Shown: one piece after another, positions 4,408-13,700 of the stretch
How the letters are laid out: every line of letters begins with the position of its first letter
Position numbering within the stretch: position 1 is the first letter of the stretch
DNA from: Hyaloraphidium curvatum SAG 235-1
Lineage: Eukaryota; Fungi; Monoblepharomycota
Assembly (NCBI GenBank): GCA_025558095.1
Contig: JAIVFI010000016.1
Coordinates: forward strand, 186,001-250,000
Length of the DNA stretch: 64,000 bases
Direction: 5' to 3'
Made by a program: the position numbers and the translations under genes
The notes under the pieces: generated by a model
The model's input: only the letters and a program-made list of their open reading frames with translations
Databases searched by the model: none
Told to the model about the DNA's origin: nothing

Positions 4408-5180
4408 CTCGGAAAAGTGTAGTGCGAAGGGACACGAAAGCGCTGCTATTAGATATCCCACGCCCCATGTCGAGATACAACGACGACCTAAAGGATGATG
4501 CTGCGAGATCTGCTCCTTCCCCCGAAGTGGTAGTTTTGCCTCCATCCGCTGAACAGGATTTCGGATCCCTCCATCCATCTCTAGAAAGGAGCATCCGCCC
4601 AGTCCGGTTCGTCATTGTCCTCGATGAATTCGCTCTGCCGTCAAAAGCAACGGTTTCTGACATGTACTGGAACCCGGTCCCTGAAGGCGTTGCTTTCGCC
4701 CCTTCTCTTTGCTTGCAAATAGGGCGTGATTGTCGGGGGTAGGCTGCCCTCGTGTCCGATGACAACCCTCATGGTTTTGGTGTATGGAGCCATCCGTAGT
4801 TCCTTGGATCTCGTCTGCTCGGCTGCCAGATCACCTTGCAATTGTGTAAGCTTCGTCTTGCGGTTCTGAATCATCGCCTTGTGGCTCTCCACGGCTTGAA
4901 GGGCGAGATCGAGATGAGTCTGGAGCGAAGAATCCATGTGGACTTCGTGCAAGTCTGCCGGTCCCTGTGAGATTGTCAGCAACATTTTTAACCTGTCGAG
5001 AGACGGCGGGCGTCTACCATCGATTCCGCATCGGCAGCAACGATTCAATCCGAATGATCAGAGGAACGCCATTGCTTTGCGTGCACGGGATCGGATGTCA
5101 GTCGTGTGAAGCCTGAGCCCACGCTACCCTGGACTCTCGACTCGCTTTCATTCTCGGTCGCAGCAGGTATCCTCGGATTG

Positions 5181-5311
5181 TGTCAGGACGGGGCGCGGGG
5201 GACCCGTAAAGACCTGTGTTGACGACGTTGAGGAGTCACTACACAGCACTGCGCCTAGTCTTCCCTCGCCGGGGACCACCGTCCCCCTTGCCCCGACGCC
5301 GGCGCGTTACA
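5181..5311 (-). repeat. 3' LTR (131 bp)
   Basis: Base-for-base identical to 10529-10659; termini TGTAAC...CCTGACA on the minus strand. Confidence 0.97.
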
Positions 5312-8300
5312 TCACCCCCCCCCAACCGCCGCGTAGGACCCGGCTTGTCCGGAAAGCGGCGGTGAAAGTCGGCAACGGCGTCGGGGGCGTGCTGGAGGTG
5401 CTCCCACGGTTCCCATGAGCGCTCCGATGGAGGAAAGTCCTTCCAGTCCACCAAGTACTGCAAGTGATTGCGGAATCGGCGGGAATCCAGGATCTGGTTA
5501 ACCTCGTACTCGGGTTCGCCGTCAATGATGTCCGGGGGTGGAGTCTCTGCGACGCGGCCGGGAAAATCGGCGGTGTCCGAGGGAGTATAGGGTTCGAGAA
5601 GCGAGACGTGAAAAACGTCATGAATGCCCATCGTGGGCGGAAGATCCAATCGAAACGCAACGGGATTGATCTGCTCCTTAATGCGGTAGGGCCCGAGGTA
5701 GCGAACGTCGAGCTTGCGAGACGGTCGACGCGTACGAATATTGCGCGCCGATAGCCAAGCACGGTCGCCGACGCGGAAAACGGGAGCATCCTCACGACTG
5801 ACGTCTGCGGAGTCTTTGTAGCGTTCCTGGGCCCGCTGGAGGTTCTCGCGAAGGACGTCGTGGAGGGCGCGAAGCTCCCTGATGCGTTCCTCGGCGGCGG
5901 GAACGCGCGGCGCGTCGGGTGCTAAAAAGTCGGCTCGCGGGTCGTAACCGTAGTTGGCGCGGAAAGGCGACATGCCAATGCTGGCGTGCACCGAGTTGTT
6001 GTACGCGAACTCGGCGAGCGGGAGCTGATTGAACCAGTCGTCCTGGGCGTAATTGACGTAGGTGCGGAGGTACTGCTCCAAAATCTGATTGATGCGCTCC
6101 GTCTGGCCGTCCGACTCGGGGTGCGCGGCCGAGGAGCGGTAAAGCTTGATGTCCATGAGTCCAAGAAGCCTTTCCCAGAATTTGGCGATGAATTGCGGTC
6201 CGCGGTCGCTGACGATGTCGAAGGGGAAGCCGTGGAGGCGGAATATTTCGCGAAGGAAGAGCCGAGCGGTGTCGTCGGCGGAGAAGTCCTTCCGCGCGCC
6301 AGCGAAATGAGCCTGCTTGGTCGACCGATCGGCCACGACGAGCACGGCGTCGAATCCCTCGGACTGGGGCAGGTCCGTGACGAAGTCCATACTGATCGAA
6401 CGCCAAGGTCCGTCCGGGATTGGAAGTGGCTGGAGAAGGCCGTGCGGGGCATGGCGCGGGGCCTTGGTTCGCGTGCAGGTCTCGCAGCTCCGAATGTAGC
6501 GGGCGACGGTGTCCCAAACACGCGGCCACCAAAAATCTCGCAATATGAGCTCCACAGTCTTGCGAATTCCGAAGTGGCCGGCAGTAACGGCATCGTGACG
6601 GGTTCGGAGAAGCTCCGTCCGAGACTTGCCGACCGGCACGAAGATGAGACCGTCGCGGTAGAGAACGCCATCAAGAAGATGGAAACGAGAAACGGACGCG
6701 TCGTGAGCCTCCAGAAGAGCGATAATGCGACGGGCGAATGGGTCCTTGGCCGTATCGCGACGGATCATGTCCAGGAAATCCAACGAAGTCGCGTGGAGCG
6801 CGGCGACCAGGTGCGGCCCGAGGAGCGTGACGCGCTGTTGCGTAGAGACATCGTCGAAGTTGCCCGGAACGTAGTCGGAGCGGCGAGAAAGCGCGTCGGC
6901 GACGACTTGATCGGTGCCGGGTCGATGCTTCAAAACAAAGTCGTAGCCCGCGAGGGTCATGGCCCATCGAGCCTGACGGCGATTGAGCATCTGCTGCTTC
7001 ATGAAGTACTCCAGGTTCTTGTGGTCCGTGAAGACGTCGACTTTATGCGGGCTACCCTCGAGGTATCGCCGCCACGCCTTGAACGCGTCGACAACTGTGA
7101 GTAGCTCCTTGTCGTAGATCGGGTAGTTGATCTCCGCCGGCTGGAACTTCCGGGAATGAAACGCCACGGGATGCATAAGCCCGTCGTCGGGGGCGGGCTG
7201 CGACAGCACGGCTCCGAGGGCGAAGTCGGAAGCATCTGCCTCAACTGTGTACGGAACGGCTGGATCGGCGTTACGCAGGAACGGAGCCGAAGTGAAAGCG
7301 GATTTGAGCGCATCGAAGGCTGCGCGAGCTTCCGGCGTGAAACGGAACGGATCGCCCGGCTTGAGCTTAGTGAGGTCCGTGAGCGGAAGTGTGATCTGCG
7401 CGTAGTCCTTGATGAAGCAGCGGTAGAAGTTGGCAAAGCCGAGGAAGCTTTGGAGCTGGCGAAGGGTCGCAGGCTCGGGCCATGAGGTGATGGACTCGAC
7501 CTTGGAGGGGTCCATGATGACCTTGCCGTCGCCCACGATGAACCCGGCGTACTCGACGGTCGTAACATCGAACGAACACTTGGAGAGCTTCGCGTACAGG
7601 TGGTTGTCCCGGAGGCGCTGCAGAACCTGGCGCACATGCCCCGCGTGATCGGCTTCGTTCTCTGAGAAGATCAAGATGTCGTCGAGGTAGATCGCGACGA
7701 AGATGTCGAGTACGTCATGGAAGATGCTGTGCATGAAGCGCTGGAAGATGGCCGGCGCATTCATGAGGCCCATGGGCATGACGAGGTACTCGAACTGGCC
7801 GTAGCGGGTGCGGAAAGCCGTCTTCCACTCGTCTCCTTCGCGGACGCGAATCTGACGGTAGGCTTCGCGGAGATCCAGCTTGGTGAAGATCTTTGCACGG
7901 GAGAGGCGGTCCAGAAGGTCGGAAATGAGCGGGATCGGGTAGCGGTCTCGCTTCGTGATCCGGTTGAGACCGCGGTAATCCTCGCAGACGCGAAGCCCGC
8001 CGTCCTTCTTTTTTGCAAAGATGACTGGAACCCCGCTCGGAGAATCCGAAGGGCGGAGACGCCCCGATGCGGAAAGCTCTTCGATGTGCTTCCGGAGTGC
8101 CTCGGATTCGACTTCGGAGAGGCCGTGGAGACGTCCAGAAGGAGGGACTGCCCCTTCTTCGAGTTCGATTGCGCAATCGAAACCGGGACGATGCGGCGGC
8201 AGTGACGATGCAGGCTTGTCCGGGTCGAAGACGTCCGCGAAGTCGGCGTACTGCGATGGGATCGTGGGCTCGGCGGCGGCCGCGCTTGCAGCGCGCGCAG

Positions 8301-9275
8301 CGGGGTCGGAGACCATGGCGACGAAGATCTGTGCGTCCTTGCGCTCGCGACGCATCTCGGCGACAAACTGGCGCGCCGAGAGATTAGCGATCTTCACCTT
8401 AGGCGGCGGAGGCGGAGGTACTTCCGGAGGCGCGCCCCGACCGGTCCCATCGGCCGGGGTTGGCCTCGGCGGTTGTTCGTCGACCCCGCGGCCCAAGGGG
8501 ACGGCCTGCGGAGGTCTGCCTGCGTCGCCCGATCCCATGGAAGCCGAAAAAGAAGCCGTGTGTGGGTATTCGGACTCCGTGATGTCCTCGAGGATGGTCC
8601 GGTCGCTGGCCTGGCTGGAGGCGGGGTCAGCAGCTGGGAGACATCCACCGGCAGAGACGGATACGTCCACCGGGGCCGCCCGGCTGGCGCCTTCAGCCGG
8701 GCTTGTCTTTGGCGGTTCCTGATCCGCCGCCGGAGCCTTAGGCCCGCTCAACGGCGGGGAAACTCCCGGTGCGAACGGGCGAGGGATCCGCAGGGATCGA
8801 CGGGACCAATCGAGCGCCGCGTTCACGAACTCGAGGTACGAGAGTCCGAGAACGACCGGAATCGACGCGCTGATGATGTTGAAGCTGACTCCGACGGTAA
8901 TGCCATCGGCTGTCAGTGCGACGGGCTCCGTCTCCTGGGTGACGTCGCCCGACGAAATAGGCCGCCCGTCCACCACGTCGAGCCCGAAAGGCGTGGAGCG
9001 CTGCAAGCACGAGTATCCAACGCAGCGCGCGAAAGCCTCGTCCATGAAGCAGGCGTCGGCGCCGGAGTCCACGAGTGCGTCCACGATCCGAAGCCGGCCG
9101 TCCGGAAGCACGATGCGCACGGGAATGACGAAGGAAGGAACCGGGTCGGACCGGAGCAGAGGAAATGGCGGCCGCCCGGAAGACGCCGCCAAGCAAGGGG
9201 CACGGGAAAACTGAAGACTTGTATTGGCATCGCCAGCGTCGGAGGTGCCCCGGAATCCGAGCTGGCGTTTCAAAA
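5239..9275 (-). CDS. pol: Retrotransposon Pol: aspartic protease, reverse transcriptase, RNase H, integrase, GPY/F, chromodomain (-1 frame relative to gag)
   Basis: LVDSGADACF (PR); KLDLREAYRQI, MPMGLMNAP, YLDDILIFS (RT); ADASDFALGAVL, TDHKNL (RH); HDAVTAGHFG..CETC, DFVTDLP, SDRGPQF, GQTER (IN); YLGPYRI; YEVNQILDSR..YLVDWKD..SWEP (chromo). The start given is the inferred frameshift point. Confidence 0.95.
5312..5327 (-). other. Polypurine tract (PPT)
   Basis: Minus strand GGTTGGGGGGGGGTGA immediately precedes the 3' LTR TGTAAC. Confidence 0.85.
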
Positions 9276-10463
9276 AGACGACGATGCAGACTTGGCGGGG
9301 CAAAAGGCCTTGACGTGACCGGGCTGACCACAGTAAATGCAGAGCCCCTCGCGAAGGCGGCGCTGGCGCTCCTCCGGCGTCAGCTTGGCGCGCGACCCTG
9401 AGGACGCCGAGCCTGAAGCCCCGCCCGGCTGGCCAGATGCAGACGCGGAGCCCAGCACCATCGGCACGGGGCCGGAAGCACTTGCGGAAGGAGCTGCCGG
9501 AGAGACATGCGATCCGATGGGCACCGACTGCATCGCTCCGGGGTAGGGATACCCAGAGGTGGGCCGGTCGCGGCTCCGAGCTTTGCGCAGCGCAGCTTGC
9601 TGCTCGGAGAGGCGAACTTGAGCAGCAAATGCGATCTTCTTCGCTTCCTGGTACGTACTGGGCTTCGAATGCTGGCCCATCTGGTTCACGATCTCCGCGG
9701 AGAGGCCAGCCAGGAACATATCCATGAACGTGGCATCACTGTAGCCCTCGACATCCGGCTTCAGGCTTTCAAATTCGACTGCGTATTCGGCCAGATGCCC
9801 GGGCTTCTGGACGAGTGCATGGAGCGCATTGACGGCGGAAGTGTGTCGAAGTGGCATCTGAAAGGTAGAGAGAAACTCCTCGCGAAGCGAGATCCACGAG
9901 GGCGCAATCGTCCCGGAGCTGCTCTGCTGGGCAGCAAACCAGCGGAGCGCATCGCCCTTGAGAAGCAGACTGAAGAACGCGATCTTTTGGGCGTCCGAGG
10001 CAAGCTCCGGCTTGAGCTCGAGCGCGTTGTCGACCTGCATCATGAAGTAACGGGTGCGTGCGTGATCGGTCCCGTCGAACTTGTCCGGGGTAGGCACGTT
10101 GATCGGTTTCGCGGTTGGGGCAGCAGCGGCGTGCTGGGGCAGGAACCCCATGCGCGCGACAGAGCCGACAAACGCGTCCGTGAGCGCAGCGGCGGACACC
10201 GAAATCGGAGCAGACAGAGGAGCGTGCTGCGCGACGTGGGTTGCTTGGGAAGCGCGGTAGGTGGCGACTTGGGCACGGATCGGGAGCGCGATGAACTCGG
10301 GCTGAGCGTCGCCGAGGGCGTCCAAGAAGCTGACGAAAGCAGCACGCTCCTGCGGCTCGAGGGTATCAAGGAAAACCCTTTCGCGCTCGATAAGGACTTC
10401 GACGGGAGTCTGGGGGTCCGGGGTCGCGGAGAGGAGATCGCGGAGAGCGTCGGCGCCAGCCAT
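9270..10463 (-). CDS. gag: Retrotransposon Gag with CCHC zinc knuckle
   Basis: PDKFDG..KIAFFSLLLKGDALRWF capsid-like region; ERQRRLREGLCIYCGQPGHVKAFC knuckle typical of sushi/PEG10-type Gag. Confidence 0.93.
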   Translation of the reverse strand: MAGADALRDLLSATPDPQTPVEVLIERERVFLDTLEPQERAAFVSFLDALGDAQPEFIALPIRAQVATYRASQATHVAQHAPLSAPISVSAAALTDAFVGSVARMGFLPQHAAAAPTAKPINVPTPDKFDGTDHARTRYFMMQVDNALELKPELASDAQKIAFFSLLLKGDALRWFAAQQSSSGTIAPSWISLREEFLSTFQMPLRHTSAVNALHALVQKPGHLAEYAVEFESLKPDVEGYSDATFMDMFLAGLSAEIVNQMGQHSKPSTYQEAKKIAFAAQVRLSEQQAALRKARSRDRPTSGYPYPGAMQSVPIGSHVSPAAPSASASGPVPMVLGSASASGQPGGASGSASSGSRAKLTPEERQRRLREGLCIYCGQPGHVKAFCPAKSASSSF

Positions 10464-10515
10464 GCTGCACCGAGGGCGAGGTCACGGGGAACGGGAAACG
10501 TGGATTCAGGGTTGG

Positions 10516-10526
10516 AACGTCGTCAA
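10516..10526 (-). other. Primer-binding site, self-priming type
   Basis: Minus TTGACGACGTT lies 2 nt downstream of the 5' LTR and is the exact reverse complement of LTR 10577-10567 (AACGTCGTCAA). It has no TGG tRNA-CCA complement. Confidence 0.85.
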
Positions 10527-10528
10527 AC

Positions 10529-10659
10529 TGTCAGGACGGGGCGCGGGGGACCCGTAAAGACCTGTGTTGACGACGTTGAGGAGTCACTACACAGCACTGC
10601 GCCTAGTCTTCCCTCGCCGGGGACCACCGTCCCCCTTGCCCCGACGCCGGCGCGTTACA
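10529..10659 (-). repeat. 5' LTR (131 bp)
   Basis: Identical to 5181-5311; followed on the + strand by the TSD GATTG. Confidence 0.97.
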
Positions 10660-10749
10660 GATTGGGATGATGACCCAGACAAGCGGTGTGTCAGCAAGCA
10701 ATCCTCCTCTATCTCTCACTTCCATCAGACACAGCACACACGCCACGCA

Positions 10750-13700
10750 TCAGAAGCCTCGGACCGCCATCACCACGTTGTACGCAAAAACCCCCACGAT
10801 CGTCGCCGCCAGCAGCACGAAAGAGGCGTAGGCCACCGGCACGTCGTCCACCGGGAACCAGGGCGGCAGCGTGCGGAACTCAGCCGAGCGGAAGGTTGGC
10901 GGAAGCGCCATCTCCGATCCCATCGTGGTCGGCGACAGGATGCCGAAAGGGTCCTCGCCCTCGGCCTCGGAGCGGTAGTTGGCAAACACGTCCCCGCCCG
11001 TGTCCGACTGGACCTCGACCGAGTCGTCCGTGCCGACGCGCACGTCCACCAGGTCCTGTTCCGCCTCGTCAGCAAGATGCACGGCACGCTTCCTGGGTCC
11101 GGAGCCGTCCCCTTCCCCGTCCGGTGGGTGCGAAAGCGGCATGGGCAGCGGGGGAGGGATCGATGGCAAAGAGGGCAAGGAGGGAAAGGATCCGTGAATA
11201 GGCGTCTCGGGAAGCTGGGGGATCTTGGGCGCCGAAAGCCTGGATCCGCCGCTTTCGATATCGAGCTTCGGCACCGTAGGCGCCGGAGGCGGAATAACCT
11301 CGGGCTCTTCCTGCGGAGCGTCGGCCAGGTCCATCGAGGGGCGTGCCAACGGCATCCTGCCCGATGGGAAGGAGTCGCCGTCCGCGGGCAGCGAAAACAC
11401 CGACTCGACGACGATGCTCGGCGTGGTGGGGATGGATACCGGTACCACCGGCACCATTCCATCGACAGTTTCGCTAGTTCCTGCTTCGCGGATCCTCGGC
11501 AGCGTGGGAGTCGCGGGGGAAACTTCCACCGACGGGCTCGGTCCCGCTGGCGAGGCCATGATGGGCGGCAACGTCCGCGGAATGAGCTCAGGCAGCCGCG
11601 AACGGGTCTCCAGCACGGGGAGCGCAGATTCCGGTCCCGTAGGCAGGGGGTTGCTATCCCGCCGCGGGCCAGAATCCGTCCGCGCGCTGAGCATTCCGCT
11701 TGACGAGGAAGCCCGGCTCACGTTCACAGGGGGGATCGCCAGGCGTAGGTTTGACGACGTCTTTGTCCGCCGCCGGGGAATGGTGGCCCCGCCGGGCGCG
11801 TGTGCGTCCCAGGATCGGTCTCGCTCCAAGCGCTGCTCCTCCTTCCACGAACCGCCCCTTCCGACCGGTTGCCGCGGCCGCGGCACCACACCCCCGGCAG
11901 CCGATCGCTCCCATGCCTCCAGCGAAGCGCGGGGATTGGGTCCGCTTTCGACCATGTCGTCGGTCCAGTCCGATCGCGCTGCGTCCGTCGATTCCGTGCC
12001 GGTGGTGTCCGTCCCGCCCGTTCCGCCCGTATCCCGCGAAACGAGCTGCTTCTCGCCGCTGCTCGGCGTGCTTCCGATGAAACTCGCCGCCCAGCGCGAG
12101 ATGTTCCAGCTTCCCGAGCCCTGCTGCGTCCGATCCCACATGTTGGCCGGCACCGGGAGCCCCGGCGACTCCTCCGTCGCCGGCGTGATGGGCGCCACGG
12201 GCCCCTTGGTGATGCCAAACAGCGAGCCCTTCATCTCGGTGAAGGTGAGCGCATTGTTGAGTTCCTCGGCCAGAAAGCTCGACTTGCCCCTCGCCGTGCG
12301 CTTGCGCTGACGCGCCAGCGTGCTCGGCGGGACCATCGGCGGCGGCGGCGGCCTCTGTGGCGACGGGCTGCGCGTCGACCGGCTGGAGACGCTCCCTTTC
12401 TTGGCGCTCCCCGCCGCGCTCGACCTCCGCCGCCCTGCAGGCACCGGCGGCGGCGGCGAAGCCCTCCCCGATTCCCCCGAGACCGAGACCGACCTCGCCC
12501 TCTGCGTGCTCGTGGCTCTCAGCGAGCTCGCCTCCCTCGATACGTCCAGCCCCCCGCTCCTTCCCCGCGCGGGTGCCTCGTCGAACGCGATGATGCTCCC
12601 GCCCCTCCCCACAACCGCGGGGCCGGCCGGCACCCGCGGCATCAGCCAATCGTCCTCCGTCAGCACGTCGTCCCTGTACACCGCCGGCACCGCCATCTCC
12701 ACTTCCACGGGCGTCCGCGGCGGCGACCCGGCGTCCTGCCTGACGGGCGTCGTCGCCGGTACCGCCGTCACATGCCTGTTCCCCGGCGTCCGCGGCAAAG
12801 TCCACGTTCCCAACCTGGCCTGCGCATGCGGCCGCGGCAGGCTCGCGTGGCCCCGCGCCAGGGCATCGAGCTCCGCGGGCGCGAGCTCGGGCGGCACAGC
12901 GGCCATCCGCACGCCCTCGTCTGTGTGGAATGAGGCGGAGCCCATGGGGCTGGGGACGGGGCTGACGCGCTCCCCGTTCCCGTGCCAGTCGCCCGGGCCC
13001 AGCGGGGGCGTCAGACCGCCGTGCGTGGGCGTGCCGGGTGCGGAGCCCGAAGTCCACGGCCCGCGCCCAAAGTAGTCTCCGGCACCCTCGCCGTCTTCCT
13101 CGAGCCTGGCCGAGCCAGGGGCTGCACGCATTGCGCCGACCTCCTCTTCGGGCGGCACCACGTTGATCGACATGGGCGTCTCCGGGGTCGTGGCCGGCGA
13201 CACGAGCGGGGTGCGGCTGCGCTCCGAGGTCCGGGATCGCTTCTCCTCCTCGTACTCGTCCTCGATCTCCTCCTCCTCGAACTCGGACTCCTCCAGGGCG
13301 TCCAGGTCCGCGACGAACGCGACGACGGTCTTGCTCCACGGGTGCACGGCCAGCAGCAGGTCCTTCTGGTGCCGGTCGAGGCACACCCCGCCGCGCTCGT
13401 TCCAGTCGGCGAGGAAGCGGCGGGATTTGAGGTACACGAGTAGGGGGAGGAGGAAGTTGGCGGAGGAGGTGGCGATGAGGGAGGACCAGAGGATGAAGGA
13501 CTGCAGGCCGGCGCCGGATTGAAGGGGGATGGCGATGAGGAAAGGGAGCACGGCGGAGAGGAAGGTGCCAATAACTGATGGGAGCTTTGTCAGGTCGCAC
13601 CAAGCGCAGGCGAACACGCTTTCGACCCACTCTTGCCGCAGATCCGGTTCTGGATCAGGTTCTGGTACACGATGATGACAAAGATGGGTATGCTGGTCAT

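Follow-up and report, generated by a model that had tools for sequence, protein, structure and literature searches.

Self-priming has been known since 1995 for Tf1, an LTR retrotransposon of Schizosaccharomyces pombe that has LTRs of ~350 bp and a single open reading frame (ORF). The first 11 bases of Tf1 pair with the primer-binding site (PBS), after which RNase H severs the RNA between base 11 and base 12 (PMC7175516). Tj1 (PMC4600332) and Tcn1 of Cryptococcus (PMC7175516) have been proposed to prime in this way as well, and self-priming is predicted for most members of the Tf1/sushi group and of the Tcn1 clade (PMC6317226, PMC7175516), the latter being reported from basidiomycetes and a chytrid (PMC2864245). 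We analyzed an element of Hyaloraphidium curvatum SAG 235-1 and, in the literature that we searched, found no paper substantively linking Hyaloraphidium with retrotransposons. Since self-priming is known from Tf1, Tf2, Tj1, Tcn1, and the Tf1/sushi group, this element, here called family 1 together with its genomic copies, would be an undescribed example of a known mechanism. We put at about 0.85 the probability that family 1 uses its own RNA as the primer for minus-strand DNA synthesis, in the manner of Tf1. An earlier, sequence-only reading of the locus had implied that this would be new, which does not hold, as self-priming has already been described as a common trait of the Tf1/sushi and Tcn1 chromoviruses, whose hosts range from fungi to vertebrates (PMC6317226, PMC4600332, PMC7175516).

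The window, i.e., the whole stretch of 64,000 nucleotides that was analyzed, contains on its minus strand (10659-5181) a complete LTR retrotransposon, delimited by direct reading and a repeat search (Table 1). Its two LTRs are 100% identical, and the pol frame is -1 relative to that of gag. Pfam searches of pol matched RVT_1 (residues 431-590, E = 5e-35), RT_RNaseH (680-787, 8e-34), Integrase_H2C2 (894-948, 8e-19), rve (966-1062), SH3_Tf2-1 (1179-1239, 3e-20), and Chromo (1266-1316, 2e-12), and they detected no protease domain in pol. The domain order is thus RT-RNase H-integrase with a C-terminal chromodomain, as in chromoviruses, and the chromodomain combined with the Ty3/gypsy domains of gag and pol therefore identifies the element as a chromovirus. 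The junction between the polypurine tract and the LTR (...GGGGGTGA followed directly by TGT) is common to family 1 and its relatives. The pol frame continues through the polypurine tract and ends 73 nt into the 3' LTR (5239-5311); part of U3 is thus coding, making the element still more compact. With a total of 5.5 kb, the element is nevertheless of ordinary size, and its earlier description as extremely compact was overstated. Only the LTR is short: at 131 bp it falls within, but near the bottom of, the 100 to 1000 bp generally given for LTRs (PMC1858694) and is the shortest in our comparison set, in which that of a metagenome element (L115) comes close with 145 bp. An Rfam search of positions 10300-10800 gave no match. 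Within gag, we also observed a perfect 13-nt inverted repeat, AGGAGCGTGCTGC / GCAGCACGCTCCT (10351-10339 and 10230-10218, gap of 108 nt), which by a rough count is beyond chance in 5.5 kb and is present as well in another copy (L031, 2163-2175 / 2284-2296).

Table 1. Features of the family 1 element in the window
Feature	Position	Strand	Basis
TSD CAATC, upstream copy	10660..10664	-	read directly; identical 5 bases behind the 3' LTR
5' LTR, 131 bp, TGTAACG...CCTGACA (TG...CA)	10529..10659	-	direct repeat
Putative U3, 82 nt, GC-rich	10578..10659	-	deduced from primer-arm position
Candidate self-primer arm AACGTCGTCAA	10567..10577	-	perfect reverse complement of 10526-10516
Remainder of R-U5 with predicted small hairpin adjoining the LTR end	10530..10566	-	minimum-energy fold
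GT spacer, LTR end to PBS	10527..10528	-	read directly
PBS TTGACGACGTT, self-complementary type, without TGG	10516..10526	-	read directly; same in 13 5'-LTR copies
gag, 397 aa	9270..10463	-	ORF; Pfam Retrotrans_gag 1.3e-12, Ty3_capsid 3.9e-11
pol (RT, RNase H, integrase with Tf2-1-type SH3, chromodomain)	5239..9303	-	ORF and Pfam
Polypurine tract GGTTGGGGGGGGGTGA, G-rich, adjoining the 3' LTR	5312..5327	-	read directly
3' LTR, 131 bp	5181..5311	-	repeat search and direct reading
TSD CAATC, downstream copy	5176..5180	-	read directly

The PBS region, GTTTGACGACGTT, has no TGG. The LTR ends at 10529 and is followed by GT and then by the PBS TTGACGACGTT, all 11 nucleotides of which are complementary to the arm AACGTCGTCAA inside the LTR. 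The arm begins 82 nt from the start of the LTR and 49 nt from its end, and 40 nt separate the two partners. Among 5000 shuffles of the LTR, a single one gave a complement of at least 11 nt anchored at offsets 0 to 4 past the LTR, and the analytic expectation is ~1.4e-4. The proposal of a PBS without TGG that has a perfect 11-nt complement in the LTR therefore stands, and its coordinates were exact.

Family 1 resembles Tf1 and Tf2 of S. pombe and Tj1 of S. japonicus in its chromovirus-type pol, which carries both a chromodomain and an SH3 domain of the Tf2-1 type, and in its PBS, which lacks TGG and is complementary to a sequence of the 5' LTR. The small predicted hairpin by the LTR end recalls the U5-IR-like structure that Tf1 reportedly requires (Lin and Levin 1998, cited in PMC7175516). 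The arm of 11 nt has the length found in Tf1 (PMC7175516). In contrast to Tf1, family 1 has an unrelated primer sequence, no TATA box, a shorter LTR, gag and pol in separate frames, and a GC-rich, chytrid-like fungus as its host. Furthermore, self-priming is experimentally established in Tf1 and predicted in family 1.

In the genome (31.9 Mb, 55 contigs), we found at least 13 family 1 copies with a 5' LTR and a PBS, 11 of them identical across 180 nt. The RT-integrase region was present in at least 8 copies with 97 to 100% amino acid identity, most of which have long open frames. Family 1 is young and probably still active. The R-U5-PBS segment was invariant in the 13 5'-LTR copies and in ~20 further LTR copies, and the differences between copies fell in U3. 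Covariation between PBS and R across family copies, one of the checks suggested for the locus, accordingly gave no signal in this set: the copies are invariant, and the diverged one (L026), in which a G-to-A change in the PBS breaks one arm-PBS pair, reflects decay only. In a separate locus (L031, G000:C27:601000-608176), a family 3 element is nested within a family 1 copy. The family 1 part (positions 1855-2695; 841 nt at 99.8% identity) comprises the LTR, the PBS, and the start of gag, and from position 2696 onward it gives way to the family 3 LTR, TGTCAGGG...CCTGACA, which has an arm/PBS pair of its own; the contig stops before the 3' side.

We then compared family 1 with sister families in the same genome and with relatives from elsewhere, which were found by protein search at 48 to 55% identity and whose contigs were examined for LTR, arm, and PBS. 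The comparison set comprised 10 elements from 9 lineages, namely family 1 and 8 others: families 2 and 3 from the same genome (44 to 52% and 52 to 58% amino acid identity, respectively), Powellomyces, Microbotryum, and 4 metagenome elements. One element (L113) was left out, as it had no 5' LTR in the stretch examined. In each of the 8 other lineages, an arm in the LTR had a perfect complement 1 to 2 nt past the LTR end. These arms were 9 to 14 nt long and unrelated in sequence, and the shuffle P values ranged from <2e-4 to 4e-3. The pairs were as follows: family 2 (L034/L035; LTR of 193 bp ending in CCTGACA), arm ACCGATTCTCACT and, one base past the LTR, PBS AGTGAGAATCGGT; family 3 (L031/L032; LTR of 213 to 226 bp), arm CGAACGTTCGGATA and PBS TATCCGAACGTTCG; Powellomyces hirtus (L108; 343 bp), AGCAGACCAA and TTGGTCTGCT; Microbotryum (L114; 373 bp), AATCTTGATCT and AGATCAAGATT; and, for the metagenome elements, L109 (444 bp), CAGTCTCGACAA and TTGTCGAGACTG; L111 (about 232 bp, start imprecise), AACGGTCAA and TTGACCGTT; L112 (about 242 bp, start imprecise), ATCTAACAA and TTGTTAGAT; and L115, AGTACAGGAA and TTCCTGTACT. 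An alignment of the nine lineages' arms by their 3' ends showed 2 to 4 Watson-Crick pair types at every one of the last nine positions, and no pair was broken. Regeneration of the PBS from the primer in each cycle, as the general scheme of reverse transcription has it, would explain this perfect pairing despite the drift in sequence between lineages. The surroundings of the pair were also shared: of the 10 elements, 8 have an LTR that ends in (C)CTGACA and 7 have the GT spacer, and in 4 of the 9 lineages the arm ends in CAA and is followed by C.

Two further observations were made. In one family 3 copy (G000:C3:1153488-1153595), a C of the PBS is replaced by T (the opposite strand reads GAACGTTCAGATA), so that a G-C pair becomes a G-U wobble and the pairing is preserved. 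In addition, L109, L110, and L115 from metagenomes, as well as L037 (C2:667500-677499, period of 5236), L040, and L041, are head-to-tail tandems with one LTR between units. Head-to-tail tandems of Tf1/Tf2 have been attributed to integrase-independent insertion at PBS homology (PMC11042837); those in metagenome contigs could be assembly loops through the LTR.

The predicted RNA structures agree with the arm-PBS pairing. An unconstrained fold of 10577-10505 contained all 11 arm-PBS pairs at -26.8 kcal/mol (z = -3.95 against 200 shuffles), together with a hairpin, so that the suggested folding check came out in favor of the duplex. Two further pairs, formed by AC with the GU spacer, were predicted past a one-base bulge (C). 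Of the two extra stems that had been put forward for the intervening 40 nt, ACGGG/CCCGT was retained, as an inner stem pairing ACGGG (10555-10551) with CCCGU (10540-10536) in the unconstrained fold, while CAGG/CCTG proved to be an alternative register of a predicted GUC/GAC stem. At the equivalent place, the folds of the two sister families, 2 and 3, have a predicted hairpin with CAGG.../...CCUG as its closing stem. The folds of these two families gave z values of -5.2, -3.9, and -4.8 against shuffles, which places all four tested folds between -3.9 and -5.2, and the arm-PBS duplex was part of the unconstrained minimum-energy fold in 10 of 10 elements.

Folds alone cannot tell a priming duplex from any other structured leader, and the duplex might instead act as a signal for packaging, dimerization, or translational control, with priming occurring by another route. 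We consider this very unlikely, since the right arm always sits at the place of the PBS, 1 to 2 nt past the terminal CA of the LTR, where no other PBS candidate is present, and since the equivalent layout of Tf1 has been tied to priming by experiment (PMC7175516).

At the boundary of the arm, the window shows an unpaired C directly behind it and then 2 bp with the GU spacer (10566-10564 with 10528-10527). The same arrangement of arm, bulge, and 2 bp recurs at the equivalent place in L111, L112, and L114. In the modeled structures, the bulge and the 2 bp past the arm might mark the site of the RNase H cut.

A different source of primer would be a host small RNA, either a tRNA fragment or another species, that binds the PBS, the match with the LTR being incidental or a by-product. 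Internal tRNA halves are indeed used by some copia-type elements (PMC6317226). We therefore compared the PBS with host tRNA 3' ends, another check proposed for this locus, and found no partner: among the 31 tRNA genes that a search with the Rfam tRNA model yielded, an incomplete set for which 63 of 281 candidates were scored, the best complement of the family 1 PBS to a tRNA with added CCA was 7 nt and internal, and it was 7 to 8 nt for families 1 to 3. The genome has 80 occurrences of the 11-mer, mostly in the element family, and ARAGORN found a tRNA gene at none of the 32 examined sites outside this family. Moreover, this reading would call for nine different host RNAs, one per lineage, each of them also happening to match the LTR of the lineage that it primes. 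Priming by a host small RNA is thus extremely improbable, even with the incompleteness of the tRNA set in its favor.

The genome itself provided a control for the PBS method. Family 4 ("complex gypsy"; L036 to L039 and L042, including its relative L038) carries, right behind its LTR, the PBS TGGTCCGACCTCCGTGAT, an 18-nt match to tRNA-Tyr(GTA) with CCA and a canonical TGG PBS. It was located at position 1441 of L036, 1190 and 6415 of L037, 1307 of L038, 8297 of L039, and 842 of L042, and it had no complement of 6 nt or more in the LTR of family 4. This tRNA-Tyr PBS is a working control for the method. Families 1 and 4 (L038) belong to the same superfamily, share the genome, and are both young, but family 4 differs in its LTR of ~465 bp and in having the TGG PBS for tRNA-Tyr(GTA) and no self-complement. 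One genome would therefore host both tRNA-primed and self-primed gypsy lineages. Two other inverted repeats were evaluated as candidates and set aside. An 11-nt repeat of family 4, GCACTTCCGTC / GACGGAAGTGC, was rejected as a fourth self-priming pair because it lies inside gag and because family 4 has the tRNA-Tyr PBS, and a 14-nt repeat in L037 (246-349) lies in AT-rich DNA outside any element.

Besides Tf1, Tf2, and Tj1, the described systems most like family 1 are the chromoviruses of the Tcn1 clade and the Tf1/sushi group, with Cryptococcus Tcn1, elements of Batrachochytrium and mosses, and vertebrate sushi. The nearest named relatives in a protein search were from Powellomyces (52%), Microbotryum and Ustilago (48%), and vertebrates (41 to 45%). 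In a quick maximum-likelihood tree of the RT-RNase H-integrase region, built from a set without named Tf1, Tcn1, sushi, or Maggy references, the self-complementary lineages formed one clade with fungal, amoebozoan, and vertebrate chromoviruses (100% SH-aLRT). The tRNA-Tyr lineage fell outside the self-complementary clade, across the deepest split of the same tree. Together, the nine lineages with unrelated but perfect arm/PBS pairs, the presence of the 11-mer in no tRNA gene found, and the tRNA-Tyr control strongly support Tf1-type, tRNA-independent self-priming, as the sequence-only reading had suggested.

Self-priming of the Tf1 type would have the transcript begin with the arm. In 6 of the 8 other lineages, a TATA box precedes the arm by 30 to 46 nt, counted from the arm's first base (for example, TATATAAA at -33/-34 in family 3, TATAAATA at -31 in L109, and TATATTTA at -33 in L115), and in the TATA-bearing lineages the complementarity stops exactly at this base. 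The arm begins with an A behind a pyrimidine in 7 of 10 elements; that of family 1, preceded by CCTC and beginning with A, is initiator-like. Such a TATA distance and a pyrimidine-A step are the geometry expected of an arm that, like that of Tf1, forms the 5' end of the RNA. The 70 nt preceding the family 1 arm contain no TATA motif, and family 2 has no TATA box either. The start of family 1 at 10577 is therefore proposed by analogy with its relatives and is plausible.

Family 1 might also prime itself from a transcript that starts upstream of 10577, in which case the arm would be internal to the 5' leader, the hairpin would be cut from a longer 5' end, and U3 would be shorter than 82 nt. There is no TATA box in family 1 to fix the start, the chemistry requires cleavage on the arm's 3' side rather than a 5' end at its first base, and the start site of S. 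pombe Tf2 shifts between conditions (PMC5341516). The TATA boxes of the other lineages, by their distance from the arm, and the end of the complementarity at the first base of the arm speak against an upstream start, which we regard as unlikely. With a start at 10577, R and U5 together measure 49 nt, so the strong-stop cDNA would be only ~40 nt long and R is necessarily short. No polyadenylation signal was visible in family 1.

Only one public run (X1, available as assembly contigs, RNA or DNA uncertain) holds the element, and we examined it over positions 9800-10760. The depth was ~110 in the single-copy flank (10691-10760) versus ~34 in the multicopy interior of the element, and a contig with a diverged LTR variant had a depth of ~449. 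Plain DNA would not be expected to give such a pattern, and the run may thus consist of RNA or of a mixture. The contigs break ~30 nt inside the LTR ends, as predicted for de Bruijn assembly, and are uninformative on transcript starts and ends.

The events at the family 1 leader can be pictured as follows. The transcript would begin at or very near 10577, and its first 11 nt, AACGUCGUCAA, would fold back across the 40-nt, hairpin-bearing loop to pair with the PBS (10526-10516). The RNase H of the element, for which pol has the domain, would cleave behind the 11th base, i.e., after 10567. The freed 3' OH would then prime the short strong-stop cDNA, which would be transferred to the copy of R in the 3' LTR.

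A joint proposal, which we hold to be doubtful, is that family 1 is near the natural minimum of a working self-priming LTR and that the recurring motif is a conserved determinant of the RNase H cut in fungal self-priming chromoviruses. The minimum may consist of a TATA-less U3 of 82 nt, 49 nt of R and U5, and a strong-stop cDNA of ~40 nt, and the motif of the cut site might be an arm ending in CAA, a single unpaired C, and two further pairs with the GU spacer. If this were true, family 1 would offer a small model system in which to study what self-priming requires in cis.

Our findings leave the current view of the self-priming mechanism unchanged and add an early-diverging fungal lineage with a GC-rich genome to those in which self-priming is well supported, a lineage in which self-primed and tRNA-Tyr-primed gypsy lineages would exist side by side in one genome. 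The nine lineages form a clean natural covariation series, with full turnover of the sequence and perfect arm/PBS pairing kept throughout. They also suggest rules for annotation, namely, an LTR end of CCTGACA, a GT spacer, a PBS of 9 to 14 nt, and an arm 30 to 46 nt past a TATA box. Finally, the very short LTR of family 1 may help to define the minimal requirements for the promoter and for R-U5.
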